Positions 19,712 to 50,982 are shown, numbered from the stretch's first letter. The stretch: 64,000 nt of DNA from Paramoeba atlantica (GCA_977017575.1 CDRNVI010000002.1:806001-870000), one strand, 5' to 3'. Program-made: numbers and translations. Notes: generated by a model from the sequence alone, not told the origin.

Positions 19712-20209
19712 ACAAGCCCCCCTGGATAAAAAAAACTCAAAATTCCGCGGGGGGAAGATACATGTATCTTGAAACCACTGTATTAACCCGGAACACGGTA
19801 CAAATTAAATCATTTACAATGCCGATACCTCAGTTCTTATTTTTTGCTATTCTCACAACAGGTTCGTCTCATTATTTTTCTTCTAAACTGTATGATGACA
19901 ATTTTAACGTGATTGCTGTTCTGTGCAGGAAGAAATGATAACGTATACCCACAATTCGCTGAGTTATTTTTTATTTTGTGTACACAGAACATTCACATTC
20001 ACAAAATCACGTTCATAAAATCAACATAATAAATGTAGCCTGCGCCTACGCCGTCTCACCAATTCTTTTTATTTGCATGAGAATATATTTCTAAGGCTTC
20101 GTGAGGATGGATCTCTTATGAATGTATGACAGTGTATTGTAAGTCCCTTGATCGTAGCACGTATGCTGTATGATAGTATTCGGACTGTTTCACGTAGACG
20201 GCTGCGCCT

Positions 20210-23200
20210 ATGTTTCCTTCGAGAGAAGCGGGCACCTGCCCACTAATGAAGCTTCGCTGTCAACTATTTGTACTGGATCATGTATACGAGACAGATTTTG
20301 CAGACCAAAAAAGCCATGGAACTACTATACTTAACCGTGTGTCTAGGAAACACGAAATCAGTTCATTGTCCTCTAGCTATCCTGGAAGCGTTTCAGCCCA
20401 ACAGGCTCGAGTTCCGGTGCTCAGGTGTTTCGGAAGAACATTGAAAGGGGAAAGCGTATGCGCTCGAATTCACGGAGTTTTTCCTTACATTATGCTTTAC
20501 TCACCTCTTCAGCACTCGAGAGAGAATGGTTTAGGTGTCTGGGATGACACTCTTCCCCGTAGGTTTAGCTGCACATTGGAAGATGCTATTAGAGAGCAAT
20601 ACCACATGCCACGAAATAGAAACATTATTCATTCCGTATGTCTTGTAAAGGGAATGCCTTGCTATGGTTATCATCCTGATTCTGCTATCTTTTTTAAAGT
20701 GGAATTCTATCACACCGCATACGTAAAGCGTGCGGTAAATGTTTGCACTCAAAGCACAGCTGTCGGTGGTATCAAATGGCTCCCACATGAAGCTCACTTG
20801 AGTTTTGAGTTACAATTCTTAGTTGACTTTGACCTTGGCGGCATGTCATGGCTGGACCTGTCTGATTGTAAATCTGCGCAACACAAAACGACTACAGTTG
20901 AAATTGAAGTAGACGTGGAGTGTAGAAACGTACAACCCGCTGACACAACTGTGACACAAGGTCATCGCTTTCAGTCGGTGTCATCTATGAAGTATGTTAC
21001 GATGGAATTGGAAGAATTCTATAAGAATACTAACGCCACAGATATGTTCTTATCGGAGCTGAAAGAAACTGAATCCGCATATCACACAAACAATACTGAA
21101 GCATCTTTGATATTATGTGACAACAAGAAGAATCCTGTCAATCGTAACATGGAGAACATGTTCGAAGAACTCTATTCAGTTTCACATAAAGAAGCAGAAG
21201 TCGTGCATTCAACTCCTTCATTATCATCAACGGGTGCCTTCAGTGACAAAGAGGCTACACCAGAGCCATTAACTTTGGATCTCATTCGCGAGATCGGGCG
21301 CACCGGATACAGTCCTGAAGCCATATGTTTTTTAGATGATGATAATAATTCAATCAAGCGCAATAGTAGTTCATGCTTAGAGCATTCCTCTACGAGCACC
21401 GAATTTTACAAACAAGAAAGCGAAGATGTTTCTTTAAGCCCACGTGAAAATGTCAATGTACGTCGGGAGCTTGACTTTGAAACTCCACGAAAGGCTCGGA
21501 ACTCAGGTCGTAAAAAGACAAAGGATACATCAGCTCGCCGTCTACAGCATGACATTCTGAACTACAACGCTTTTTCTCAGGCAGAGGCTGCAAGTTATTC
21601 CATCTCGTGCAGTGGTAAAACGCAAGATTCTCTTGATTCTGTTGAAAGATCAGAAAGTTCCATTGAATTGTTCTCAGATCGTCCCACTGTGTCTATCGGT
21701 CATACCAGTGAATCATATTTCCTTCCAAGGAGAAATGGACAGGACGAAGTGAGTCATATCGAAAAGCCTGGTACTCCATTACATAGTCCCATGCGCGCTC
21801 AAGGAGAGTCAGAGGATTTTATTCTTACTCCAAAACGCTGTGTGCGCTTTGACAACTCTTCAAAATCAGCTGGGTTGGGTTCAGTCTCTGAAAAAGAAAC
21901 ATGTTTAAGAACTGACGGCAGTTCAGCCGGACATTACAAGTCTATGCCCAAGTCTATTTGCGGTCCTATGAATGTTGGTGTCCCGAAAAGGTGGAAACGC
22001 GTCGTTTTTCGTACTTCCGCTCCATCTTGGAAATCTGTTGAAAGTACCCCAGATTCCATAAACAATCGGCAAGATCCTTTTCCTAGAAATGCATTGCCTA
22101 CTTCCCTTTCTACTCGATCATCCCAAGCATACAGGGAGTTTCAAGAGATATTCAAAAAACAGACTTATTATCCTGAGCATTATGATGTATCATTGAAGAC
22201 TGAAATTAATTTGACCATATCTGCAAGAAATTTGTCCCCCAGCTGGGCAGAAATCAAGTCCTCCTATGACACCTGTTCCAGAAGTGCAGAAATGGCTATC
22301 CGAGATAGAATACGAACACCAAGTGGAGAAAAGGGAATATATACAGCAATTTCTGGGATAAAAAATGTGCGCAGCCCTGAGGCTTTTCGGTTGGAAAATT
22401 CACGTAGGCATCTTGTTCAATTACGCTGCCTTTATTTCGAGATTATGATAGGCGCACGAGGTGTCTTACGTGCTGCATGTCTAATCTTTTATAACGCTCA
22501 ATCGGAGAATATTACCGACTCCGAGATGCATATAATTGGTGCTGGGGCCCGAAGGTTGCGCACGAAAGGCCAATCACAGTGTCACGTGTGCTGCATTTAT
22601 CACCATACAGAATTTTTACTTCTGCGTGCCGTGGAGAAAAAGTTGGTCAATAGTGACCCCGACCTCATTGCAGGGTGGGAAATACAAAAACGAAGTTTAG
22701 GATACTTTATATCAAGATATAAACATGTCATCGGGAGTGAACCTGTACTCGGAAGATCGATTAGTAATATTACTGATAAAGATGCGGGTTCAGCTGCACC
22801 GGATTCAAGGCCAAAATCTAAGGAAATCAAATCAGACGATGACCAGAGTGACATAAACCAAATTGATAGAGATGAAAACCGAAAGAAACATAGAGAACAT
22901 GAAAATTTTCTGTCCGTTTTCGGTTCTGTTTTGAATGCAGCCGAGAAAGATGAGTCAAGTGTGTCGTTGGAACACGTATCAGCAGACACGTATAAATCTT
23001 CGCGAACTCTACATTTACATGGAAGAATACTAATAAACTTATGGAAAGTCTACCGGAGCGAACAGAAATCCAAATCATACACACTTCAAAACGCAGCATG
23101 GCATTTACTGCGTCGTAGACTTCCTGAACATTCAGACCTAAGTTTGGAGCAATACCTAACTAATGGATCTGTTTCCCAATCCTACTATGCTCTACATCGC

Positions 23201-25381
23201 CTTTGGGACTACACAATGTGCAGTCTTGAAGTTTGTTTGAAGCTAGATTTCCTTGTTCGCACCGCTGAAATGGCTAGAATCTACGGTATACAATTCTTTG
23301 AAGTCCTCTCCAGAGGATCTCAGTTTCGTGTGGAATCTATCCTGTTGCGAATAGCCCGGCGTCAAAACTATGTCGTGCTTTCACCATCAACAGAAGAAGT
23401 AGCCAGGCAAAACGATCAAGAGGCGGTACCCTTGGTAATGGAACCTGCCAGTGGATATTACCGCGACCCCGTTCTTGTGCTAGACTTTCGGTCCCTGTAC
23501 CCTTCCATAATAATCGCATATAATTTGTGTTACACTACTTGCCTTGGAAAATTATCCCGATTGGAAAGTAAAAAATTGGGAGTTTTATCAGGATATCAGA
23601 CTCCTGTTGATGTTGTTAGATCTATCAAATCTCACATTAGGATTGCACCCAACACTACGATGTTTGTCAGTGAGGACCTTCGTAAAGGCATTATTCCAAC
23701 AGCACTGCGTTCAATACTGGGTACAAGACAGCTTGTCATCAAGGCAAGAAAAAAAGCTGAAGCTGAGAGCGATCTCATAGGCAGCCGGGTTCTTGAAGCA
23801 CGTCAACTGGCTCTCAAGCTGCTAGCAAATGTTATTTATGGATATACGGCCGCGACATGGACAGGGAGGATGCCGTGTTCGGACCTCGCCGACGCAATTG
23901 TGCTACTTGCGAGAAACGTGTTGGAACAAACTATTCACAGTGTGAACCAGAATGCGGAATGGGGAGCTTCCGTTGTGAGCGGGGACACGGATTCACTGTT
24001 CGTACATATAAAAGGGGCAACCCTACCTCGAGCTTTTCAAGTTGCGCACGAAATAATAGACTTTGTGCAGAATCGCTTTCCTTCTCCAATTGCGTTAAAG
24101 CTGGAGAAGGTGTATCTGCCATGTGTCTTGGTCGCTAAGAAGCGTTACGCCGGATATGCTTACGAATCACTTTCAAGCACTCCGAAACTGGATGTTAAAG
24201 GTTTGGAATGCATTCGTCGTGATCAAACCGATGCGACAGCGAATATGCTGACTAAAATGTTGCATCTTCTTTTCGAAAATTCGGATATTCAAGCTTTGGA
24301 AAGTTACTTTACTAGACAATGCGAAAAACTTTTAAGTGGAAGCGTGACACCTTGTGATTTGATTCTACGTCAAGAAGTTAAGTTTGGTACCTACCAAGCA
24401 GCCAATTTGCCTCCTGCAGCCGAAATTGCCGTACAAGAAGTGAAGAAAGGAGAAGGAGTTCCAATGTACGGAGAACGGGTGCCATATCTAATTACTCACA
24501 CCGCGCAGTTTGCCAAACGACTCCGTGACATGTTGGTACATCCGCGCGTATATTTTTCTAGTATAATCAGCAAACCTGATTCCGGACAATTTTTTAGTAT
24601 CAATATGTTTGACAATCCAGAGACGCAACGACCACCGAATATTCATGTAGAATACTATCTGGATAGACAAATCGTACCTGCACTGCAACGCGTTTTTGGC
24701 CTAATCAACGTGCACCTTGGCGAATGGCTCTCTAGAGTGCGAAGGTCAGTTTCTTCTATCCCTTCTATGAAAGCTACTCGTGACACATTAGATGGTTTTT
24801 TGCGGCAAGCGAATTGTGTTTCGTGTTCAAAACCGGCCGGTTCTACGGCAGTACCAATACGGACTGAAGAATTTCCCAAGCGAAGTAAAAAAGTGGTGGC
24901 CAAAAAAGCAAATGAGAAAATTGTGAATGAATCCAATGCCTTATGTCAACAATGCTTTCAGGATTCTCAGACGACTCTACTAGGCCTCCGTATGCGCCTC
25001 AACGCAGTGCAGAAGAGACTTCACAATCAATACATCATTTGCCACCGTTGTACAGGGGAAGTCGGGGGACCAGACGAAGTCTCGACGTGTGTGAACACTG
25101 AATGTCCAATATCATTTGAGCGTGTTAAATTGCAAGGAAGGTTAAGTTATCTTCATGAAACTGTTATAGATATAGAGGATCTGTTTAATCCTATAAGATT
25201 GAACAACTCTGATGAAACTCATTCAAACTTTAAGGTCGATGCGTTCTATAGAAAACCTTTTAATAAATTGTCCAACCGGGAGCCCTGCGAAACACTTAGC
25301 TCAGTCGAATCCTCAGAGTACATTGATCTTCTTACCCCGCGAGCCTCATCTCGAGATATAAACGAGATTTATGTCGAATAA
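20210..25381 (+). CDS. REV3: DNA polymerase zeta catalytic subunit
   Basis: ARIHGVFPY, PHEAHLSFELQFLVDFDL, VLSRGSQFRVES, VLDFRSLYPSIIIAYNLCYTT, LKLLANVIYGYTAA, SGDTDSLFV; C-terminal CysA/CysB clusters. Confidence 0.95.
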   Translation: MFPSREAGTCPLMKLRCQLFVLDHVYETDFADQKSHGTTILNRVSRKHEISSLSSSYPGSVSAQQARVPVLRCFGRTLKGESVCARIHGVFPYIMLYSPLQHSRENGLGVWDDTLPRRFSCTLEDAIREQYHMPRNRNIIHSVCLVKGMPCYGYHPDSAIFFKVEFYHTAYVKRAVNVCTQSTAVGGIKWLPHEAHLSFELQFLVDFDLGGMSWLDLSDCKSAQHKTTTVEIEVDVECRNVQPADTTVTQGHRFQSVSSMKYVTMELEEFYKNTNATDMFLSELKETESAYHTNNTEASLILCDNKKNPVNRNMENMFEELYSVSHKEAEVVHSTPSLSSTGAFSDKEATPEPLTLDLIREIGRTGYSPEAICFLDDDNNSIKRNSSSCLEHSSTSTEFYKQESEDVSLSPRENVNVRRELDFETPRKARNSGRKKTKDTSARRLQHDILNYNAFSQAEAASYSISCSGKTQDSLDSVERSESSIELFSDRPTVSIGHTSESYFLPRRNGQDEVSHIEKPGTPLHSPMRAQGESEDFILTPKRCVRFDNSSKSAGLGSVSEKETCLRTDGSSAGHYKSMPKSICGPMNVGVPKRWKRVVFRTSAPSWKSVESTPDSINNRQDPFPRNALPTSLSTRSSQAYREFQEIFKKQTYYPEHYDVSLKTEINLTISARNLSPSWAEIKSSYDTCSRSAEMAIRDRIRTPSGEKGIYTAISGIKNVRSPEAFRLENSRRHLVQLRCLYFEIMIGARGVLRAACLIFYNAQSENITDSEMHIIGAGARRLRTKGQSQCHVCCIYHHTEFLLLRAVEKKLVNSDPDLIAGWEIQKRSLGYFISRYKHVIGSEPVLGRSISNITDKDAGSAAPDSRPKSKEIKSDDDQSDINQIDRDENRKKHREHENFLSVFGSVLNAAEKDESSVSLEHVSADTYKSSRTLHLHGRILINLWKVYRSEQKSKSYTLQNAAWHLLRRRLPEHSDLSLEQYLTNGSVSQSYYALHRLWDYTMCSLEVCLKLDFLVRTAEMARIYGIQFFEVLSRGSQFRVESILLRIARRQNYVVLSPSTEEVARQNDQEAVPLVMEPASGYYRDPVLVLDFRSLYPSIIIAYNLCYTTCLGKLSRLESKKLGVLSGYQTPVDVVRSIKSHIRIAPNTTMFVSEDLRKGIIPTALRSILGTRQLVIKARKKAEAESDLIGSRVLEARQLALKLLANVIYGYTAATWTGRMPCSDLADAIVLLARNVLEQTIHSVNQNAEWGASVVSGDTDSLFVHIKGATLPRAFQVAHEIIDFVQNRFPSPIALKLEKVYLPCVLVAKKRYAGYAYESLSSTPKLDVKGLECIRRDQTDATANMLTKMLHLLFENSDIQALESYFTRQCEKLLSGSVTPCDLILRQEVKFGTYQAANLPPAAEIAVQEVKKGEGVPMYGERVPYLITHTAQFAKRLRDMLVHPRVYFSSIISKPDSGQFFSINMFDNPETQRPPNIHVEYYLDRQIVPALQRVFGLINVHLGEWLSRVRRSVSSIPSMKATRDTLDGFLRQANCVSCSKPAGSTAVPIRTEEFPKRSKKVVAKKANEKIVNESNALCQQCFQDSQTTLLGLRMRLNAVQKRLHNQYIICHRCTGEVGGPDEVSTCVNTECPISFERVKLQGRLSYLHETVIDIEDLFNPIRLNNSDETHSNFKVDAFYRKPFNKLSNREPCETLSSVESSEYIDLLTPRASSRDINEIYVE

Positions 25382-25861
25382 ACATTTTGGTTGAATACCT
25401 TTGTTTGACCTTACAGTAAGGGTAATAGGCGGCTTCGGAGCAGTTTTGCTGCAGCCTTGGTAACATTTGTTGCTAATCGAGGATGTTGTGATGGTTGCGC
25501 AACCACTATCAATAGCAACATAAAAGCCAAGTAGAGTGTATTCCCGGTCAATGTCCATTATTCCTATCAATGTCCATTATTCCCACCGTGATTGGCACTT
25601 CATCCGGATTAGTTTCAAATTATTCTTTGTTGAACGACGCACTGCAGTTTTGATGTGATTCGTGTCCACACCCATCTGCAATTCTTCGAATACACATCAA
25701 GTACTTTCCCTGTACAATAAGGACGCTTAAAAGCAGAATTTCATCTCTCATCATAGCGATTCGTGTTGAGCACACTTTCACGTGTTTTTACTGTCATTTT
25801 ATTCTTCGTTTTCTATTTTCTCAACTTGTATATTACATGTCCTGATCCTCCCGTGCTTCAG

Positions 25862-26638
25862 ATGGCACCTCACCGTCCTCACCTAACCTCCTTCTACCTC
25901 CCTCTCACCCTCCTCACCTGCCTTGTGCTGTGTGTCGAAGCCCTCACCGTCCGCACCTTCTTCCCCGGCTCCCTCTCCTCCCCCACTCTCCTCCTCTTCT
26001 TCCTCACCACCTTTGCCACCGTGGTCCTCCTCCTCCTCTTCGGGGTTTTCACCCCACGAAAAGACATCTTCCACACGTTAGCCCAACACGACATGGACCA
26101 CACCAATACACATAGGCCTGGTTTCTCGAACGTTGCGGAGGATCCCGGCATGTTGGACCCCGATAGCGTCCCCCCCGCCCCTCCCACGGTGGCCGATCGG
26201 GTCCCCGGCGCCACCTACTCCTGTGAGCGCTACACCCGGGACGCTCTCGCGGAGCTCCTCGGGTCCCAGCCCTACCGCCGCTGGCTGGAGCGCTCCATCC
26301 TCCAGGCCAACGTGCAGCGCACGGTGGCGGGACTCCGACACGCCCTGGTGCGTACCCTCCTGGGGTGCGTGCTCTCGGCCTGGGTGATCCGCGAGGGGGT
26401 GGGGAGGGGAGGGGGGGCGGTGGGGGTGGAGGCCGTGGCAGCGTTACTCACGGCGTTTCTGGTGGCGCTGCCCCCCCGGGAGGGGGTGGTGGCGGGGTGT
26501 GTGGTGGCGGCGAGCGGGGTGTGTTATCTAAGTGAGGGGGAGGAGGCGAGCTCGCTGCCGATTGTGACCTGTACCACCGTTATATTGCGTATATTGGCGG
26601 AGGAGACCTTGGGTGGGTGGAGTTCGTGTGTCGTTTAA
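25862..26638 (+). CDS. Hypothetical multi-pass membrane protein
   Basis: Hydrophobic segments at both ends; first in-frame ATG at 25862; C-rich 5' half and G-rich 3' half. Confidence 0.55.
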   Translation: MAPHRPHLTSFYLPLTLLTCLVLCVEALTVRTFFPGSLSSPTLLLFFLTTFATVVLLLLFGVFTPRKDIFHTLAQHDMDHTNTHRPGFSNVAEDPGMLDPDSVPPAPPTVADRVPGATYSCERYTRDALAELLGSQPYRRWLERSILQANVQRTVAGLRHALVRTLLGCVLSAWVIREGVGRGGGAVGVEAVAALLTAFLVALPPREGVVAGCVVAASGVCYLSEGEEASSLPIVTCTTVILRILAEETLGGWSSCVV

Positions 26639-26903
26639 GGGCGTGTGTTTAATTAGGGTGGGGACGGGATGGTTGACCTGGTTTGAAGTGCGGGTTTGTC
26701 ATTCTGTTCTTTTGAAAGGGATAGTACGGAGCTCATAAGAATTTTCTTTTTTAAAATAGGTACGATATACGCTCTTACGATAGCCACAAACAATCTTTTT
26801 TAAGTAATCTTTTTTTCCTGTCGGCAATACTTTTTCCCGAATGTCAAGCCTTCGAAAGGCATGCTCATGCGATTTTTCACCTTTTTGAAGGAACTGTTGC
26901 CTG

Positions 26904-27914
26904 ATGAGTTCTTCATTTGAACTTTCGCACATCTTTGTATTGGATTGCGGGCGTCAACCACTACGTCGCCTACAGGGACCGAGTGAAAATACACGAAGGA
27001 CATCCGACGGGAAAGACAATCTCTTCGTTGAATCGCCGACAAACAGTAAGGTGCTCTACGTTGCACCAAAGGTAAGTCGTCGTATGGATTTGACTTATCC
27101 TACTATCTTTACTTCCGGCGAAGAATTTGTTCCGGTGGAACAGTGGTTGGGTGAGACTCTTAAGGGTGTGACTAGTTTTCAGCTTCTCCGACGAATTTTC
27201 ATGCCCTCTGAGACCGTAATAGTTGTATGTCAGAGTCAAATACACGCCTCACGCGCTATAAACCGAATTCGGCGACACCGTCCTGTTGGTTTGCAAGCTG
27301 TACTAAACTCAGAGAATGAGTGCAACAATCAAAGTGGTGGGAATTCGAATGATCAAAATGCTGAACCGTGGCGCCGTTCCGATCATCTCGAAATGACACC
27401 ACTTACTTTCGACAGACTTGAGATACTCTGTATGTCAGCGCCGCAGTCCATCCATGGATTGATCGCGGAGCTTTCGGAAATGTCCCGCAATATTCTTCGC
27501 AGGCCCTCCGTGGTGAATACCAAAGTGTTTCACAGAATGGTGACCACTGTAGTGCGTGGCAATGTTAGAAAAGACCTTTTCCAAGCGCGTGTGAGTACAG
27601 GCGCGCCGAAATCGAGTTTGCAAGGAAACCCAAATGGGAGTACATCCATTGTGAAGAGTGATTTGCATGTATCTGACGTCATTGAGAGTAAAGAACAGAC
27701 AAATCAAACAAGTAATACTGCAACAGATGCCTTGCAATCGTCAGCGCCAGTACACGATGCTCCCTGCTCACTCTCTCTGCTTCGTTCAGTGAGATCGAGA
27801 AGTGCTCCGCATGTGTCAAGCACCAAAATAAAGAAGCACAACATTGTGCGTTCACGTTCACTCTCACCCTGCGGGTCGACAACCACACATAAGACTTGTG
27901 ACCATCTAGTCTAG
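26904..27914 (+). CDS. Hypothetical protein (336 aa)
   Basis: Long ATG ORF on the coding strand; no motif recognised. Confidence 0.55.
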   Translation: MSSSFELSHIFVLDCGRQPLRRLQGPSENTRRTSDGKDNLFVESPTNSKVLYVAPKVSRRMDLTYPTIFTSGEEFVPVEQWLGETLKGVTSFQLLRRIFMPSETVIVVCQSQIHASRAINRIRRHRPVGLQAVLNSENECNNQSGGNSNDQNAEPWRRSDHLEMTPLTFDRLEILCMSAPQSIHGLIAELSEMSRNILRRPSVVNTKVFHRMVTTVVRGNVRKDLFQARVSTGAPKSSLQGNPNGSTSIVKSDLHVSDVIESKEQTNQTSNTATDALQSSAPVHDAPCSLSLLRSVRSRSAPHVSSTKIKKHNIVRSRSLSPCGSTTTHKTCDHLV

Positions 27915-28403
27915 ATGCACGTTTTGCTTTTTTCTGTGGTAGCAAAACAGGCCTATGCGCCTCTACCCTTAGGAACAATAAGTTCCATAAAAATTGTAGT
28001 ACTTGATCTGATTTACTCTGTTCATTTCAGAAGATGCTGAGAAGATGTTCCAGTGACGGAGCGCTCCTCACGTTCGTCAAGCGCTGCATATTAAATCTCC
28101 TAGGGATTTTGGAAAGTCTTTCCTTTTCCGCTCCGTTGGTTTCAAGCTTCCGATTCCGTTGGTTCAAGCTTTCCCACTCCTCGTTTGTTTTACTGCAGGC
28201 GTCGAAAAATACTCCACTTACTAACTCTATTGCAGCTTCAGATGCGGTCATACTATCATACCGTTTAGGCAAACGTACCTTTCAATTATCCACTTATCTG
28301 CTGTAGTGCTCTTAACCTTACTGTATATAGAGAATGTCGCGCGAATAAAGGAAGCTGTCAAGTAATTTCGACTCTTTCTGTGATTTATAATTCTACCAAT
28401 AAC

Positions 28404-28982
28404 ATGGCCGATTATGTGCGTCCCGCTAAAGTCCATGGAAGTGCGTTGCCTCAGGAGTACTTATTAGAAAAAATACTGCAAGACGTGAAGGTAGTACCAC
28501 TCAAAATACCAGTAAGAAACACTTTTTGTTGGAGTACCGAGACACCTGCGTGTAAATGGCGTGGTGTGACTTGTGACGCACAGGGTATAGTGACAAAAAT
28601 CTACTGGGGCTGCTGTAACTTAAACGGTGAATTGCACTGGGAGTTCTTGCCTAAAACGCTCATTACATTCAACGCGCGTTCTAATGAGCTCCGCGGTATC
28701 GTAGAGCTCATCGATCTGCCTCCTGGATTAGAAAGCTTCAGTGCCTCTTATAACTTACATGGAGGAACGCCTGATTTACGTGAACTGCCTCTCACCATGA
28801 AGGAATTGTGGCTAGAATACAACTGCTTTGAGGGGCGAGTGGATCTGGGCGCCCTTCCCAAATCTATGAAGGCTTTACATCTTGAAGGAAATCAAGATCT
28901 GAGTGGTCAAATTGATGCCTCAAAACTTCCTCCAAAACTGTATTACAACATACGTAGCACGAATATTACGATGTTGCATTGA
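28404..28982 (+). CDS. Small LRR protein (family member 2)
   Basis: RPAKVHGSALPQEY N-motif, TPACKWRGVTC cap, LP..L..L LRRs. Confidence 0.8.
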   Translation: MADYVRPAKVHGSALPQEYLLEKILQDVKVVPLKIPVRNTFCWSTETPACKWRGVTCDAQGIVTKIYWGCCNLNGELHWEFLPKTLITFNARSNELRGIVELIDLPPGLESFSASYNLHGGTPDLRELPLTMKELWLEYNCFEGRVDLGALPKSMKALHLEGNQDLSGQIDASKLPPKLYYNIRSTNITMLH

Positions 28983-29100
28983 GACAACGACGCAGTGCAT
29001 TATTGTTAAATCATACATTACATTCAATAAATACGAATTCAATGTGCATAGATTGTATATGAATACAATATGTATTGGTCTTCAAAAATCTTTTTTGAAA

Positions 29101-37402: not shown

Positions 37403-38476
37403 ATGAATGTTTTTCTCTCATTGGTGACCCTCTTGGCCCTGTCGAGCAGCCCAAGGTCTGGATCTTCCGGATTTTCTTCTTTTCCTCTTGTTGCACTGCC
37501 TTGTTTCAGTCAGCTTAGTCTTATGTGCCACAGCGCTGAAGAAGAGGAACAAATTACTATTGAAGACTCATCAGAAGTTGAACAAAGAAATAAGAAACGC
37601 CGACGCCAGGAAAATTCTAGAACTCCCAATGTGCGTGATCCTCCTCCACGGGTCGAAGAGCCAGAGGCTAAGTCACTTGATGAGGCACATGCAAAACTTT
37701 CGACGATTCTAAACACTCTCAAAGATTCTCTGAAGCAAGGTAAAGGCTTTGTCGATGGTCAAATTCTAGAAAATCTACACGCGCAGCACGAGCAGCACCA
37801 GTTCACAGTGGCATTACTACAACGAAAACACCGTATGATGACGGAGGGTCAACGCCTAGGGACCTCACCCGATCAATTTCTTATGCTCTTCCAAACCCTC
37901 CCTGGTAAGTTGAAAGAATTTACCGAACTTGTGAACACGCAAAAAGAGCGACATGCTCGCGTGCTGGAATCCACCCTGGAGGTCTTGCGATCTCACAACA
38001 GTCCCATCGACACTTCTCTTCTCGCCTACTGTGAGCAGAAGTGGAAAGACAAGGCGTACGCCTCGCTGAGTAAAATCAACGAAATGTTACGACGACACTC
38101 CGCGATACGTTCCCGCTGGTGGGCCGGACTTACCCCATTTGAGTGGGTATGGATCACACAGCACATTGCGGTGTATTACGTACTTTATATTTTACTACGT
38201 GCCGCAGTCTACTATGCCGTGGGAAACCGGCACGGGGGGTTCATTCAATGTACCTACCGCTACATGTTACCTCTGTTCTCCTTTGTTATCTTTGGCGTGC
38301 TACACACTGAATCTAAAAGCCTACTGACGCTGTCCCTCACACGATGGCGAGTGTTGGTGATTTATGCTATCTTGCTTTGGGTGGTATATCTTTGTGAGTA
38401 CGTGCGCAGCGTACTGCGCGCATTGTACTTGTTACGCAGGCGTCGTGGCACAAAATCTGTTATACGGAAGGAGTGA
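37403..38476 (+). CDS. Hypothetical protein, coiled-coil centre with C-terminal TM helices
   Basis: Long ORF on the coding strand with three hydrophobic segments near the C-terminus; start codon uncertain. Confidence 0.55.
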   Translation: MNVFLSLVTLLALSSSPRSGSSGFSSFPLVALPCFSQLSLMCHSAEEEEQITIEDSSEVEQRNKKRRRQENSRTPNVRDPPPRVEEPEAKSLDEAHAKLSTILNTLKDSLKQGKGFVDGQILENLHAQHEQHQFTVALLQRKHRMMTEGQRLGTSPDQFLMLFQTLPGKLKEFTELVNTQKERHARVLESTLEVLRSHNSPIDTSLLAYCEQKWKDKAYASLSKINEMLRRHSAIRSRWWAGLTPFEWVWITQHIAVYYVLYILLRAAVYYAVGNRHGGFIQCTYRYMLPLFSFVIFGVLHTESKSLLTLSLTRWRVLVIYAILLWVVYLCEYVRSVLRALYLLRRRRGTKSVIRKE

Positions 38477-38851
38477 TGCTCCGCGTGGTATGTCTTTTTA
38501 GTTGGACCACTGCCTAATGTAGGAGCATGCGTACGGAGCAAACACAGGGTACTGTATCTTGACCTTGTTCAAGAGATTCATTTTGTTTTCCTTTTTAACT
38601 TTCGCATAAGAATCGTTTAATTCTGTGATCTTTTTTCCATACTTAGAGGATCACTTAAAAAGTTAGCCTACTTTGTTAATTCCTCGAAACGAAAACATTT
38701 TTAGAGCTTAGTGGTGCTTCCGTATTCTATAAATTACGGAGGTATGTACATGTATACGGAGGTACGTTGGCGGGAACTCTATACACTGTACTTTGACATT
38801 TGAGTCATAGTGCTGAGCGTGTTTCGTGAGTTACTACTGATTTGATCGCCA

Positions 38852-38907
38852 TCTTGTTTGTTTCTCTTTTCCTTACTGTTTTCTACCAATTCATATTTTC
38901 TTATGAG
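38852..38907 (+). promoter_or_regulatory. Polypyrimidine tract plus AG: candidate trans-splice acceptor
   Basis: TCTTGTTTGTTTCTCTTTTCCTTACTGTTTTCT... then AG at 38906-38907, 11 nt before ATG 38919. Interpretation assumes kinetoplastid SL trans-splicing. Confidence 0.35.
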
Positions 38908-38918
38908 CTTACTTGGCG

Positions 38919-39098
38919 ATGGATCTAGGTAACAATGAAAAATTACTAGGAGACGTCCAATACATCATGAACTATGACATAGCTCATCACATGCAAAAGG
39001 TACTCAAGCAAATAACTTGTAAACTTCCTACAGATCCAATTGAGTTTATGATTCGATACTTCGAGGCATTAGAAGAAATTGGCGCTAAAAGCACCTGA
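38919..39098 (+). CDS. Small Dpy-30/RIIa-like dimerisation-domain protein
   Basis: YIMNYDIAHHMQKVLKQITCKLPTDPIEFMIRYF fits the Y-L-x-x-x-x-I...P.DPI.F..YF docking fold. Confidence 0.6.
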   Translation: MDLGNNEKLLGDVQYIMNYDIAHHMQKVLKQITCKLPTDPIEFMIRYFEALEEIGAKST

Positions 39099-39660
39099 AA
39101 TGCATGTACTACCAAGATTCTGACATAACATTTTCTACGTGTGCACTTTGCGCACTTTTGGCGCAAATTTACCACCGGCCTACGGTGCAAATCTCAGCTC
39201 CTATTTATCGAGTCTTCTCGTGTGTGACCTAATGAAAAAACAGAGCAAGTGGGAAGTAGGTTCTCGTGATCCTAGAAGCAGGCCGTGAAGTAAAAGGCAC
39301 TGTTTCAAAAATGATGGTTTACCTTTAAGATTGGTCACGCAAAAAAATCTGATTGTGAAAATTAAAAGAAAATTAAAACTCAGTGTTAAACCTCTGAAAA
39401 TGAATGAAAGGTTTTGTATCTATCATACACGAATTATACGTGCATCATACAGGATGCATCATACATGTATACATGTACGTGCATCAAACAATCATACGTT
39501 CATTTCGATACATACGACTGTCCATCTTGTACGTTTTTGTGTAAATTCTTGTACAAAAATATCACCGGCTTCTGTTCGTACTTTAATTTATTGAAAGTGC
39601 TTTGAATTTGTTTATCCTTTTACTTCTCTTTCTTCATAACATATCTTTGATAATTCGGTA

Positions 39661-39831
39661 ATGACATCTCCTGATCACAATTCGAATTCATCGGCATCTG
39701 ATATTTCCCACAATGAGAATTTTGATCCGAAAATGTGGACTATTCCGAAAGTGGATAACTTGTCTGATGAAATCGACGATAAACTAGCAGAGTTTATTCA
39801 AAAAAGGGAGCAAGAGTTCGAAAAAGCTTAA
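39661..39831 (+). CDS. Small acidic ORF (56 aa), unverified
   Basis: MTSPDHNS...DDKLAEFIQKREQEFEKA*, preceded by a pyrimidine tract; below the ORF-track cutoff. Confidence 0.2.
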   Translation: MTSPDHNSNSSASDISHNENFDPKMWTIPKVDNLSDEIDDKLAEFIQKREQEFEKA

Positions 39832-39981
39832 CCTGTAAGGACGGAACGAATCTTTGATCTTTGTGATCTTCCATACGACAGTACCGTTTCTAATGTGCTC
39901 TTTGAAACGCCTTATCATACATGTATAATTAATTTTACATCTTGATCTTTCCTGCACATTTGTTTGTGTTTCTTGCACATA

Positions 39982-40288
39982 CTGTACCCCCCTGTTTATA
40001 ATAGCCTCGACCCCTCCCCCCCTTTATAGGTTCTTTTTTTTGGCGAACCACGGAAAATGTTTTTAATTTTCTTGCACCGTCTTAACTATTTTGATATTTT
40101 CACGTGGTTCTTCGAGGTATGGCGCGGGGTGGTGCTGGACATTTTACTTTGGCAGAGCACCGGGGCCCACTTTGCGATTGAATAATCGCCCAAATGTAGG
40201 GCGATTTCTGTGCGAACTTTTAATCGCCCTCCCCCCTTTATAGGTTCATTCGGGCCAAAGCGAGGCTATTATAAACGGGGGGGTACAG
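39982..40288. mobile_element. MITE, 28-bp TIRs, TA duplication
   Basis: TA|CTGTACCCCCCTGTTTATAATAGCCTCG ... CGAGGCTATTATAAACGGGGGGGTACAG|TA. Confidence 0.9.
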
Positions 40289-40542
40289 TATATTTATTTC
40301 GGAGTGATGTGACCCCCACCTAGTTTAGTGCCGCGGGGTACCCTCCCTCACCTACCTAGTGCCGTTTTTCTACATTTTTGGTTTCAGCTTTTTTGGAGGG
40401 TGGGAAGAAAATTTGGAGGATACAGTATGTATCTTTTGCTTGACTCACGTGAAACGAATAGCATACTTACAGGCCTAGAAGTTTCTATCAATTGTAATTC
40501 AATTTACTGTGCCCCCCCCCACTTATAGTGCCGCGGGGTACT

Positions 40543-41116
40543 CCCCCACTTATAGTGCCGTTTTGACAAAAATGTTCGAAAAATGACTAATTGTTTTTGT
40601 CCAAAAAGTACAGTAAACATGGTGGAAATTTCTAACATTGAGTGGCTTAGTTAAACGTGGTGGCTGTTTTCAACTTTGAAGCCACTCACGCTGCGCGCTT
40701 AGCGTTGAAAACTACCTCCGCGTTTAACGAAGCCACTAAAACCAGGGCAAAGTGGATGAGGGAGATGCCAATAGTTTAGATGCGGCATTTTCCACAGAAA
40801 AAACGGCATCTCTACCTTTTTAGGCGCTTGTCTTCATGCCATAAGGGAGATACCGTTTTTCCTGTGGAAAATGCCGCATCTAAACTATTGGCATCTCCCT
40901 CATCCACTTTGCCCTGGTTTTAGTGGCTTCGTTAAACGCGGAGGTAGTTTTCAACGCTAAGCGCGCAGCGTGAGTGGCTTCAAAGTTGAAAACAGCCACC
41001 ACGTTTAACTATGCCACTCAATGTTAGAAATTTCCACCATGTTTACTGTACTTTTTGGATAAAAACAATTAGTCATTTTTCGAACATTTTCGTCAAAACG
41101 GCACTATAAGTGGGGG
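40543..41116. repeat. Long inverted repeat: 270-bp arms, 34-nt loop
   Basis: 40543-40812 pairs with 40847-41116 with about 5 mismatches by eye. Confidence 0.95.
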
Positions 41117-41134
41117 GGGCTATAAGAATAACCG

Positions 41135-41304
41135 AGGGCAAAGTGGACGAGGGAGTACCATTAGTTTAGGTGCGGCATTTTCCACAGAAAAAACGGCATC
41201 TCTACCTTTTTAGGCGCTTGTCTTCATGCCATAAGGGAGATACCGTTTTTCCTGCGGAAACTGCCGCACCTAAACTATTGGTACTCCCTCGTCCACTTTG
41301 CCCT
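41135..41304. repeat. Second copy of the hairpin tip: 68-bp arms, same 34-nt loop
   Basis: Loop TACCTTTTTAGGCGCTTGTCTTCATGCCATAAGG is identical at 40813 and 41203. Confidence 0.9.
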
Positions 41305-42295
41305 GGGTTACATAAGAAAAACATGTTCCCTAGGACTCCTTACAGCTTCCCACGCGAGGAAGTCGTCGTCGCTGCGGCAAAAAGTCAAAAGGCTCCGCCA
41401 TCTTCTTTTTGCATTGTGCCTCCTCCTTCCTCTAAGGTCTTGCGTATCCCAAACCTGAAGTTGAAGAAAGCATATGTGGCGAATTGGGGTTTGCAAATCG
41501 CTTCCAAAGAAGGGGGTCCCGAGTGGTCGAAAAGGCGCGTTTTTTTACCTAAAACTATCAATTTATGCTGCTGCCTTTGGTTCTTTGCGAAAAAAAACTT
41601 TTTCAGGAAAATTTTTCGCCGGGCCAAATTTATTAATATAGGATAGCGAGGGAGTAGTATCTCCCTCAATACGTTTTAGGAGTCGATTTATCAATCACGC
41701 ATCAATCGCGGTCTCAAAGGAAGAAAGCGCCAGAGAAGCTTTAACAAAGAGCGAAAGGCAATTTTAAGGAAGGTGCACCTTAAATTGCTCCAAGAAATTA
41801 ATGGTAAGCATGCAGTGACGAAGGTATTTATCTTTTCCGTTATGGAAACATACTGAATACGGTTAGTCATTTCGAAACTTGTTTACGAATTAATATTTCA
41901 TAATTTTTTATTTTAGGGCATCTTTATTTCACAATTTTTTACGACCATTCCATTTACAGCGCTTATGCACTCAAAACCACATGATAGAAAGATTTGCGCC
42001 GCGAAGCGGCGCGCTTTTTTTTTTTTGAGGGTGGAAAAATTTTCACCCTCGATCTGAAACATACTACCCCCCCACTTATACTGCCGTTTGGTCGAAAACC
42101 GCGGCACTATAAGTGGGGGGGGCACAGTAATAATTCTTGAGAACATTTTAATTATTTGTGTATCCCCACTCATAGTGCCGCTTGGCCAAAACCCGCGGCC
42201 CTATGAGTGGAGGAGGACGCAATAACTATCGATTTCCTTTTTTTCATCATTTTTCTACTATCAACTATTTTTCTACTATATCCCGCATACTAGAT

Positions 42296-42979
42296 ATGGT
42301 ACTTTCTGTACGGACCGTATTGGTCCACTCCGCGGACAGCCCATCGGCGAGTACGTCAGTGATGAAGCCGGCTAAAGCACGGGGCATTGCACTTCCTCAA
42401 GAGTATCAATTGGTTCGTATGTTCGAAAATGTCAAAGATCTCCCTTCTACATGGAATATAGACACCCCGGCCTGTGAGTGGGAAGGCATTTTATGTATAG
42501 AAAAACGTGCTAGTTTTTTTCATTTGACAGGAAATGTGCGGTTTCTTGATGGGCACCCCCAGTGGGAGTATCTTCCAAGCAGTGTGACATGCCTCCATCT
42601 CCCTGAAAACCGACTGTGCGGCGAGATCAATACAAGTTCATTACCAAATGCTTTGACAGAACTTAACGTGCGAAACAATGTGAAACTATCCGGCGAAGTC
42701 AACCTTGGAACTTTGCCCTCCGCACTGACCCTCTTCCTGATTTCATGCAATTCCTTTTCTGGAGAACTAGACTTTGGAAATTTGCCGGCGACCATCAAGC
42801 AGCTTTGGATGCAAAATAACAAGTTCAGCCATGCGATCGGGCTCCGCTCCCTCCCGGTTTCGCTTAGAGTGCTGTACTTGCATGATAATCCCGAGTTAGT
42901 GGGAGAAATAAATGTTACTCTTTTACCTGAGTTTTTAGCTTTAAAAACATGGACAAATACTCAAATTCGAGTGCTGTGA
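42296..42979 (+). CDS. Small LRR protein (family member 4)
   Basis: KPAKARGIALPQEYQL, TPACEWEGILC cap, LRRs. Confidence 0.8.
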   Translation: MVLSVRTVLVHSADSPSASTSVMKPAKARGIALPQEYQLVRMFENVKDLPSTWNIDTPACEWEGILCIEKRASFFHLTGNVRFLDGHPQWEYLPSSVTCLHLPENRLCGEINTSSLPNALTELNVRNNVKLSGEVNLGTLPSALTLFLISCNSFSGELDFGNLPATIKQLWMQNNKFSHAIGLRSLPVSLRVLYLHDNPELVGEINVTLLPEFLALKTWTNTQIRVL

Positions 42980-43131
42980 AATAAGGGCTTTTACTCTCGT
43001 GTACGTGTTTCCTCTCACCATCATTAGATTCCTCTTAGTTTTAAGGAATGGAGACACTCTTGGAGCAATACTGTTTATTCGATGACATATTTTTCTAACC
43101 CACTGTCACAAAACTATTATTTATTGTAACA

Positions 43132-47616: not shown

Positions 47617-47787
47617 AATATTATTCATGATCTTTTGGCGGTTTTTCTTTTTTAGGCTCTTCGTTAAACGCGGTGGTTGTTTTCAACTTAGAAGTCACTC
47701 ATGCTGCGCGCTTCGCGTTGAAAACTACCTTCGCGTTTAACGAAGAGCCTAAAAAAGAAAAATCGCCAAAAGATCATGAATAATATT
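47617..47787. repeat. Inverted repeat: 71-bp arms, 29-nt loop, sharing its core with 40641-40737
   Basis: 47617-47687 pairs with 47717-47787 (4 mismatches); loop TTAGAAGTCACTCATGCTGCGCGCTTCGC. Confidence 0.9.
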
Positions 47788-48910: not shown

Positions 48911-49182
48911 TTCAAAATGCGGTCAAAAGGGCATATTTTTGTACCAATTTTCATTTTCAATGAAATTTCTACCCGATGAGTCGAAAGAAATTCTTAAACT
49001 TACGGAAACATTTTATCGTTCCTCATTAATAATGTACAGAAATATTACAAATGCTTGGGTTAAATTAAAGCAAAATTCGCCTTTTTTTAAAAAAAAGTTT
49101 TTTTTTGCGGTTTTCAAAAATTTTGTGCAATGAAATCAACACTTTCCGCTTCTAGTTTTCTACTTAAATACTTGGACAAGAC

Positions 49183-50152
49183 TTATAAATGAATATAATG
49201 ACAATGATCTTGTAGATTCTGTAGGATGCGCAGCATTACATCGCCGCCATTGTACCGTAGGCTGCCGTTGCATTTTTCAGCATTGGCTTGCACACGATCT
49301 GCCCGTTTATCCTTTTTCCTTCCTAATACGTTTCCTTCTCGATTAAGTCTCTTCTTCGCCACCGAATTCGCGCACTCCACAGTGTTCGTGTGGACACCCT
49401 CTTCTGTTATCCATTCTCGGCGGTGGTTCACGCTATTCCACTTATAGCGTCCACCAAGGCGGATATTGTGACGCGCCCCGTCGGTCCAAGTTCGTGTCCT
49501 CCCCCCGCTCGCCAGATCTTCAATTCGAGGAAGTAACGTGCTCGCCTTACGATCAGGTACAACTTCCATGAACATTTCAGATAATTTGTTCGCTCGAGTA
49601 GTCACAGCAATTGTCTGTGCAACTTCTGTACCATCATCTCGCACCCGTCTTGCACCATGAGAACCTCGGTGACGTTTCCGTACAGAAAAATATGTCTCAT
49701 CGCATTGCATTGAACCAACGCTGCCGCGATTCCTGATACGTCGGCGAACATGAGCTGTGGCCATCATGCCATCCATCCATTGCCTTAGAGACACAATGGT
49801 CTGCTGACTAAGTTCTGTCTCCGCTGCCGAATCCGCATGTCGTCCACCACGAGCGTACAAAATTATGTACTTTAATGTTTGCTTTGCACTTCTTTGTGCC
49901 CTTCCAGGTACGAGAGGTCCTAAGGTGGCGTACATTCCTTTGCATTTTTTAGTACACCTCCATTTCCCGTCAGTTCTATAGTAGAGTCATAGTATAGGGC
50001 GCCTTGTGTAGTCTTTTATAACATACAACCTTCTGAGCCACCAACTTATGGGTTCTTAACCACTCCCTGCATTTCGATTCGCTCCACACAGAAACTTTGC
50101 TCAAAGTGAGATTTCCTCGGCAAGCGAAGCCGTTGCATCCTTTACAGGGCAT
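49183..50152 (-). mobile_element. Merlin/IS1016-IS1595-like DDE transposase with one frameshift
   Basis: QCDETYF, WTDG, VNHRREW and GVHTNTVEC motifs. The N-terminal zinc-ribbon part (KCREWLRTHKL..C..MTL / DGKWRC..C, ATG at 50152) is out of frame by one base near 49980. Confidence 0.9.
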
Positions 50153-50982
50153 GTGTTGGAGTTGAGGAGTCTGAATCTAAAAAATGAATCTGAAAAATAA
50201 AGGAAAAAGTGGAAATACGTGATACGATACAAAAAAAGATATAATTATTTTTAGTGGGGACGACTTTCCTTTTTTTTTCAAAAAATGCGAATTTTGCTTT
50301 AATTTCACCAATGCTTGCATTGCGGAATTGCAATCACCTTTCACCTTCGCATGGCGCTGAAAAGTTTTCGGAAATGCTAGGAAGGAATGTTCATCCGGTA
50401 AGCAAATCGTAGGGTTTTACTCACTCAAATATATCACACCCTTCGCAGTAGAAGCTCATATTGTTGCGCGAAATAGAATTTTAAAGGTGATGCTAACTTT
50501 CTTTTAAAAACGGTTCCTTTGTAATGAAGGATTCGAATAAATTATTTAAATTTATTCAAATATTGCAAAAATCGATTTCGGTCAATCCGAAGAGTTGGTA
50601 CAAAAATATGCCCTTTTCACCCAAAATGCAATGTTGCAGATGCAACACTTTTCTGGAAAACGTGTGGCAGGAACTGTTGCCGAATGAACCTTCTGCCTAG
50701 AACGTGTGGAATGCGTAGTTCGATTCTTTCATTGCTATGGAACTACAAACTCCTTTTTTTCTGTAGATGAGAATATGTGAGAAGTGGAATGAAAGTTTAA
50801 AAACTTTTAAGGCATGTAATTCTGTATATTACATAACATATAGATTTTTTGGTTTCCCATGAGCAGAAACATATAGGCTCATGCAAAGCGAATTAATTTC
50901 AAAGGATTGAGATTGGTGTTATTAAGGCCACTCTTTTTGGTGTTTTATCAAGCCTTTTGTTTTTAGAGCTTAGTTCTGACCT

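Follow-up and report, generated by a model that had tools for sequence, protein, structure and literature searches.

A long nested palindrome in two transposon families: its probable origin by a local inverted duplication and its partial loss in a partner copy

How did a hairpin with 270-nucleotide arms, each containing a smaller hairpin, come to lie inside a transposon-like element, and does it have a function there? We analyzed such a palindrome in a stretch of 64,000 nucleotides (the window; positions 806001-870000 of contig C2) from a eukaryotic genome assembly of 45.7 Mb in 248 contigs. Positions below are those of the window unless a contig is named.

The palindrome and its setting

We found that the palindrome has the structure described in an earlier note on this DNA. 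A repeat search placed the arms at 40543-40812 and 40847-41116. They are 270 nt each, 98% complementary (mismatched at 5 of 270 positions) and separated by a 34-nt spacer, for 574 bases overall. The note had also claimed that each arm holds a smaller hairpin, that the right arm closes in the terminal motif of an enclosing element, and that this element is flanked by TA, and all three claims were confirmed. The two inner hairpins (40638-40674/40704-40740, 84% complementary, and 40919-40955/40985-41021, 81% complementary) both have 37-nt arms and 29-nt loops. The 22 nt at the end of the right arm (41099-41120) are identical to 42102-42123 in the terminal motif of the outer element, and TA is present at both ends of that element (Table 1). 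Folded as ssDNA, the region 40505-41135 gave -350 kcal/mol, compared to -75 ± 4 kcal/mol for shuffled sequences (z = -63). A chance origin of the palindrome is excluded.

The palindrome lies in a 3.7-kb gap between large open reading frames (ORFs); the preceding ORF ends at 38476 and the next one starts at 42182. Nearly all large ORFs in the window are on the + strand, forming a one-strand gene array. Among their products are a family-B DNA polymerase, WD40 and leucine-rich-repeat proteins, and a protein with a TP_methylase domain, which we take to be diphthine synthase. On grounds that include the one-strand array, we provisionally label the genome kinetoplastid-like. An Rfam scan of the window gave no family match. 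The gap is full of short repeats whose ends carry TA, CTGT(G/A), and a C-run. Elsewhere in the window, 49058-50310 is a 1.25-kb transposon with at least 11 near-full genome copies (91-99% identity), and its 250-aa minus-strand ORF matches an ISXO2-like/IS1595 DDE domain (Merlin-type).

The locus has a partner on contig C12. C12:964000-970500 is collinear with 38401-43000 at 99.5-99.8% identity, and C12:945547-954570 matches 20001-29020 at 99%. Near-identical locus pairs on separate contigs are common in the assembly (C2/C12, C67/C100, C60/C51, C8/C52). These pairs are consistent with separately assembled haplotypes, so copy counts from this assembly should be halved. Because many other repeats are also found on contig pairs, C12 is most simply the other haplotype.

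Table 1. Features of the palindrome locus, in window coordinates
Feature	Position	Strand	Remarks
TA flanks of E1	40505-40506, 42129-42130		TA precedes every E1 end examined
Outer composite element (E1 + E2 + local inverted duplication)	40507-42128, ~1.6 kb	+	terminal repeats 40507-40536, 42099-42128
U1, E1 terminal repeat with first motif copy	40507-40542	+	second, direct motif copy starts A
A, E1 left subterminal region (outer 196 nt of left arm)	40543-40738	+	87-93% identical in 10 other E1 copies
h, E1 subterminal hairpin (left-arm "inner doll")	40638-40740	+	37-nt arms, 29-nt loop
Stretch missing from C12	40649-40980, 332 bp		bounded by 10-nt direct repeat 40639-40648 / 40971-40980
B, first copy of 182-nt E2 hairpin module, palindrome center	40739-40920	+	chimeric right arm
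B loop (spacer of the long palindrome), 34 nt, non-palindromic	40813-40846	+	conserved, same orientation in all B copies
J1, switch point in B right arm, from R arm to left-arm copy	40861-40865		position 15 R-type, 19 L-type; homology-guided
A', inverted copy of A	40921-41116	-	contains h' 40919-41021; 3/196 mismatches to A
J2/x, non-homologous junction A'/B2	41117-41130		G-run remainder plus ~10 nt filler
E2 (B2 + I), hairpin-headed, Helitron2-like, non-autonomous	41131-41667, 537 nt	-	no target duplication
B2, second hairpin copy	~41129-41310	within E2 (-)	mirror-chimeric left arm
J3, switch point in B2 left arm	41170-41178		position 25 L-type, 33 R-type; homology-guided
I	41311-41667, 357 nt	within E2 (-)	follows B in family
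R, right part of E1	41668-42128	+	terminal hairpin of two inverted motif copies 42067-42121
Mini-hairpin in R, GC-clamped, GAA loop	41995-42013	within R (+)	~115 bp inside E1 right end

Two nested transposon families

The outer element, E1, is a dispersed repeat. In unit maps of 15 loci, the layout U1-A-R was present in at least nine loci other than that of the palindrome, with A of 196 nt and R of about 463 nt. In C37, C69, C25, C54, and C99, E1 has no E2 and A joins R directly; this empty form is ~0.7 kb. The double motif of U1 and A is kept in C37, C25, C99, C40, C29, and C19. The terminal motif had 178 matches in the genome and 0 in the reversed control, and the terminal inverted repeats are common to dispersed copies on at least nine contigs. 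TA was directly outside 13 of the 13 E1 ends listed. We saw no 8-bp duplication at the window copy of E1; its TA flanks may represent a duplicated target.

With its shared terminal inverted repeats and TA immediately outside the ends, E1 resembles a Tc1/mariner-like MITE. The genome has at least 150 DDE_3 (Tc1-type) matches, and E1 ends were found at none of the 12 such loci inspected. The only long copies with E1 ends were C63:226900-231900 and C20:189400-195200, elements of ~4.4-5.1 kb with ORFs of 450 and 352 aa. These ORFs matched no Pfam family besides a weak hAT C-terminal dimerization match (E = 0.057), and they may be cargo or an unrecognized E1-family transposase.

Other pieces of E1-type sequence were found nearby and on another contig. 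A separate 313-bp TA-flanked miniature element (39979-40291) belongs to the superfamily with E1-type ends. Its 31-nt terminal inverted repeats (97%) start with CTGTA and a C-run, and it contains internal direct repeats (40017-40036 / 40231-40250). A degenerate additional E1 left end at 40308-40368, 80% identical to 40508-40547 and carrying a second motif, is probably the stump of an older E1 insertion directly upstream. At C19:302124-306367, three E1 left ends are spaced 2,021-2,027 bp apart, which suggests a tandem array containing an E1 fragment.

The smaller hairpins within the palindrome arms belong to E1. A self-complementary match within A, the hairpin h, was present in every E1 copy examined. 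The "inner dolls" are therefore E1's own hairpin, once in A and once in A'. The core of h also recurs at 47617-47787 in a different multi-copy repeat that has other outer arms (71 nt, 94% self-complementary), and unrelated repeat families appear to have hairpin modules in common.

The center of the palindrome belongs to a second repeat, E2, which is headed by the hairpin B (182 nt, with 74-nt arms and a 34-nt loop). In 17 copies of B, compensatory double changes were seen at 8 of the 73 pairs formed by the arms, and the orientation of the loop is constant. Among B-I copies, the left flanks of B are unrelated and I is always on the right, so B marks one terminus of E2. In one comparison of a filled and an empty site, the four A's of the empty A|R junction were split 2+2 around E2, indicating insertion with no target duplication. 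E2 lies between two A's as read here, or two T's in its own orientation. Inspection of a few copies by eye showed that the final 20 nt of I make up a mini-palindrome in which 11 nt of the B arm recur.

We describe E2 as Helitron2-like, based on the lack of a target duplication and a terminal palindrome at a sharp boundary. It also resembles Helitron2/Helentron (HINE-like) elements in inserting between identical bases, in having the palindrome at one terminus and perhaps in the repeat of 11 nt of its arm at the other, and in the presence of Rep-type genes in the genome. There were 29 Helitron_like_N (Rep-type) matches, some in open frames of 2,000-3,000 aa. Rep-like ORFs 11 kb from a B-I element on C67 are fragmented, with no common ends with E2 demonstrated. 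Helitron2 3' hairpins are generally short. In contrast, the terminal palindrome of E2 is 182 nt.

Chimeric junctions and the origin of the palindrome

We found that the arrangement at this locus is unique to the locus and its partner. In a search of the genome with 40507-41120, query positions 1-235 (U1 and A) matched ~20 places and positions 233-414 (B) matched more than 30 others. Only C49 joins U1 and A with B, and there in A-B order only. This sister copy reads A-B-I-R, and the window locus reads U1-A-B-A'-x-B2-I-R. The extra DNA, ~390 bp, comprises an inverted A and a second B. The A'|x|B2 junction had two matches in the genome, at the window locus and in its C12 partner.

The earlier note had proposed a fold-back element. 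In one form of that idea, A-B-A' would itself be mobile: a miniature transposon of fold-back type, bounded by 270-nt terminal inverted repeats, whose insertion target was a TA within E1. The E1 terminal motif at both ends of the palindrome and the TA beside each (40539-40540 and 41120-41121) fit this notion. Foldback (FB-type) transposons and long-TIR MITEs likewise have long inverted arms ending in a transposon terminal motif, with TA flanks. However, the U1|A double motif that would form the left "boundary" is conserved in the interior of at least six other E1 copies, and the A|B junction is shared with C49, which has no A'. No second copy of the A-B-A' architecture was found in 45.7 Mb (~20 E1 copies and more than 25 B copies), and the chimeric arm of B2 would be unaccounted for. 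Unlike the known elements, the structure here occupies one locus, lacks a target duplication of its own, has a left end internal to its host element, and has arms that copy one end of a conventional element rather than arrays of subrepeats. The proposal of a fold-back element was not borne out, and a mobile A-B-A' has next to no probability.

The inverted copy A' shares every lineage-specific state of A; other copies are at most 93% identical. A' was probably templated by the adjacent local sequence and not by another dispersed copy, with a very recent sibling copy as a possible source.

To locate the switches between templates, we aligned the hairpin arms outward from the loop and scored diagnostic positions at which the left (L) and right (R) arms of the B family differ. 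The right arm of B is R-type at positions 6 and 15 and mirrors the L arm at 19, 25, 33, 46, 48, and 56. Two mismatches of the long palindrome, 40852 and 40861, are these family L/R differences, retained near the loop. Positions 19-74 of the B right arm mirror the left arm exactly, down to substitutions specific to this lineage, and the mirror runs unbroken into A'. The left arm of B2 is L-type at 6, 15, 19, and 25 and is identical to the B left arm up to position 25. From position 33 outward it mirrors the B2 right arm, including a 1-nt deletion that in C49 is present in the right arm only. The filler x had no local template beyond chance.

These junctions bear on whether the palindrome is an artefact, that is, a fold-back chimera of assembly or amplification or a mis-collapsed repeat. 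Sequencing of long palindromes is error-prone, and the palindrome center, including J1, is supported by a single contig. On the other hand, the palindrome lies in the interior of a 1.1-Mb contig and has collinear flanks, arm mismatches exist and three of them are compatible with a simple mutational history, and the switch point follows arm differences already present in the B family. The independent contig C12 has the same J2, J3, and B2. Because this separately assembled contig agrees in the arms and in the junctions on their right, we consider an artefact very improbable.

Our preferred reading, held with moderate confidence, is that the palindrome arose as a locus-specific, single inverted duplication within nested non-autonomous transposons, by a fold-back or template-switch route seeded at B. 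Comparison of copies shows the first step, in which a ~0.7-kb E1 (U1-A-R) received the 537-nt E2 (B-I) between A and R with no target duplication. In the second step, which we infer from the same insertion point and shared substitutions, the E1::E2 composite would have spread, leaving the sister copy on C49. The three junctions of the third step are mapped, and its mechanism we infer as follows. A strand would have been copied through A, then through the left arm and loop of B, and on for 15-18 nt into its right arm. It would then have folded back on the left arm of B, or switched to a complementary template there, so that the rest of the left arm and all of A were copied backwards to give A'. 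Return to the original track, via the non-homologous x and a second switch in the hairpin arm, would have produced B2 with its mirror-chimeric left arm.

The loop-proximal mismatches were kept and a perfect mirror follows, as predicted if an inverted repeat that already existed was the site of fold-back priming or of a strand switch. Inverted duplications are known to arise by fold-back priming at natural inverted repeats (PMC10622511) and also when synthesis switches template between the leading and the lagging strand at short ones (PMC4689423, PMC10766183). The palindrome resembles fold-back inversions at yeast double-strand breaks (PMC10622511) and the products of ODIRA (PMC4689423, PMC10766183) in that the pre-existing B, with its 74-nt arms, became the center and its loop the spacer, the new arm exactly copies adjacent sequence, and the junction lies within a repeat arm. 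In contrast to those systems, the product here is interstitial, ~390 bp, and back on the original track. It is not hairpin-capped, dicentric, or triplicated, it includes a mirror-chimeric second hairpin (B2), and it lacks a third forward A. The suggestion in the earlier note of growth by snap-back or template-switch replication is thus supported for a single event, with a switch 15-19 nt from the B loop and a mirror beyond it, but not for a family of fold-back elements.

Several observations count against a single event. No intermediate haplotype was seen (A-B-I-R at the locus, or a tandem A-B-A-B), so the order and number of events are our reconstruction. Three switches are needed, and no template or microhomology was found for x (about 10-14 nt). 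In addition, J1 and J3 are near mirror images, 15-19 and 25-33 nt from the loop, a symmetry more readily expected if two hairpin arms had exchanged reciprocally than if each switch were independent. The 8-G run at the end of A' resembles that of a true E1 terminus with one motif, in contrast to the 5-base run in the inner motif of A, and could hint that A' was derived from a sibling element.

A two-step route would account for some of these features. A tandem duplication of ~390 bp of A-B, or a sibling E1::E2 alongside in the same orientation, would come first. Since B is itself palindromic, the right arm of one B and the left arm of the next would then be inverted repeats, and one crossover between them would invert the intervening segment. 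The second A would become A', and both chimeric arms would form together. This route fits the reciprocal nature of the chimeras (the B right arm is L-mirror distally and the B2 left arm R-mirror distally), the nearly equal distances of the switch points from the loop, and the resemblance of the end of A' to a genuine single-motif E1 terminus followed by TA; one non-homologous junction (x) would suffice. However, the switch windows do not overlap, and positions 19 and 25 are L-type in both products, which requires an extra conversion tract. The tandem intermediate was not found, since the junction search gave the window locus and its partner only. The filler, placed in its pre-inversion orientation, is unlike an E1 terminus (the first four bases are absent) and unlike the sequence that usually follows B. 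We regard the two-step route as unlikely, but as a serious candidate.

Four other routes were considered and rejected. An ODIRA-type inverted triplication was ruled out by the absence of a third forward A. Cruciform resolution or hairpin-capped ends would yield chromosome-scale palindromes rather than an interstitial one of 390 bp. Insertion of a sibling element in inverted orientation, whether at A|B or where I starts, predicts junctions and a loop orientation that do not match those found. Arm-to-arm gene conversion as the sole cause makes no A'.

Decay of the palindrome and the question of function

We found that the C12 partner has lost the center of the palindrome (Table 1). C12 retains a shorter palindrome, whose 106-nt arms are 99% complementary and lie 30 nt apart. 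Since its A is truncated relative to the family consensus, C12 represents the derived, deleted state. The central loss is as expected from slippage across a hairpin between direct repeats. Deletion over a hairpin between short direct repeats is the classical outcome of slippage (PMC4134008), and the deletion here is of the type seen in the hairpin/direct-repeat assays, bounded by a 10-nt direct repeat.

The arm mismatches indicate that the palindrome is young. Of the five, two beside the loop were pre-existing, two are private to C2, and one is common to C12. The private ones, 41012 and 41060, are new substitutions in the right arm of C2, since at both positions the left-arm base is also the one found in C12 and in the family. 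Because two of the three distal mismatches are new in C2, the copied region would have had ~1 difference per ~250 nt when C2 and C12 split. The age of the palindrome is thus estimated as about, or only slightly above, the divergence of the haplotypes. As far as the two copies tell, change since the split is decay only: the 332-bp central loss in C12 and the two arm substitutions in C2. The earlier note had explained the persistence of the palindrome by recent or repeated regeneration. Repeated regeneration was not borne out, since all three junctions predate the split from C12 and later change is decay alone.

The two forms resemble alleles at human palindromic AT-rich repeats (PATRRs), where both long and short palindromes are known (PMC1851657). 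As at PATRR11 and PATRR17, a long, nearly perfect palindrome exists beside a shorter deletion derivative, with a central spacer and near-center mismatches (PMC1851657). In PATRRs, a short central spacer and mismatches near the center reduce or abolish cruciform extrusion and instability (PMC1851657). By that work, survival of a palindrome with a 34-nt spacer is unsurprising. Unlike the PATRRs, the palindrome here is not AT-rich, is made of transposon parts, and has a 34-nt spacer, and its short form is still a good palindrome (106-nt arms, 99%).

We found no evidence that the palindrome is a conserved cruciform site, origin, or centromere; the build is unique and the center is dispensable in C12. 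The suggestion of an origin or centromere was dropped for the latter reason and because the locus lies within a one-strand gene array. Judged from its sequence, the palindrome is repeat DNA of recent origin that is already in decay, and not a functional site.

A role as a source of double-stranded RNA is possible, as a side effect. A stronger form of this proposal is that the locus is a hairpin-RNA gene, in which read-through transcription gives a 270-bp dsRNA that is diced to siRNAs against the E1 and E2 families, and for which the palindrome is maintained. The surrounding large ORFs are all on the + strand, which makes read-through plausible. The genome encodes Piwi-domain (Argonaute-type) proteins (7 matches, 5 at ~118 bits), more than 40 dispersed copies share 87-93% identity with the arms, and large inverted repeats are documented sources of siRNA in Trypanosoma brucei (PMC3447711). 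But 60% of the arm length is gone from the C12 partner, the palindrome is very young with no compensatory changes in its arms, and accident fully explains its existence. We consider maintenance as a hairpin-RNA gene improbable. The locus resembles models for the origin of plant miRNA loci (PMC3237417, PMC10004981) and the T. brucei loci (PMC3447711) in being a transposon inverted duplication with a potentially transcribed long hairpin, and differs in that its arms would target transposons, not genes.

Several Argonaute-type (Piwi) genes of ~975 aa were found close together, three copies 11-13 kb apart at C29:781160-806353 and two at C49:216883-238621, which suggests a tandemly amplified Argonaute locus on two contig versions.

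A broader proposal is that the unusually long terminal hairpins of the Helitron2-like and TA-type transposons in this genome are built-in fold-back hotspots, and that one nested in another element can seed a long inverted duplication. Where genes are read as one-strand polycistrons and Argonaute is present, that duplication would immediately serve as a hairpin-RNA source of siRNA against both families. We regard this as doubtful. If it is true, the long and short forms would capture the birth and turnover of a self-generated silencing locus.

Based on these results, an exotic-looking palindrome can be struck off the list of candidate functional elements, and it is a new example of an already known kind of rearrangement. 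It provides a natural case, followed base by base and with all junctions mapped, of a long palindrome arising from a transposon hairpin and then decaying. The full and center-deleted forms are present in one assembly, and such pairs are rare beyond engineered yeast and E. coli systems or the human PATRR loci. Two transposon families of a little-studied genome bear conserved, covarying hairpin modules, which bears on how these elements move and on how they destabilize nearby DNA.
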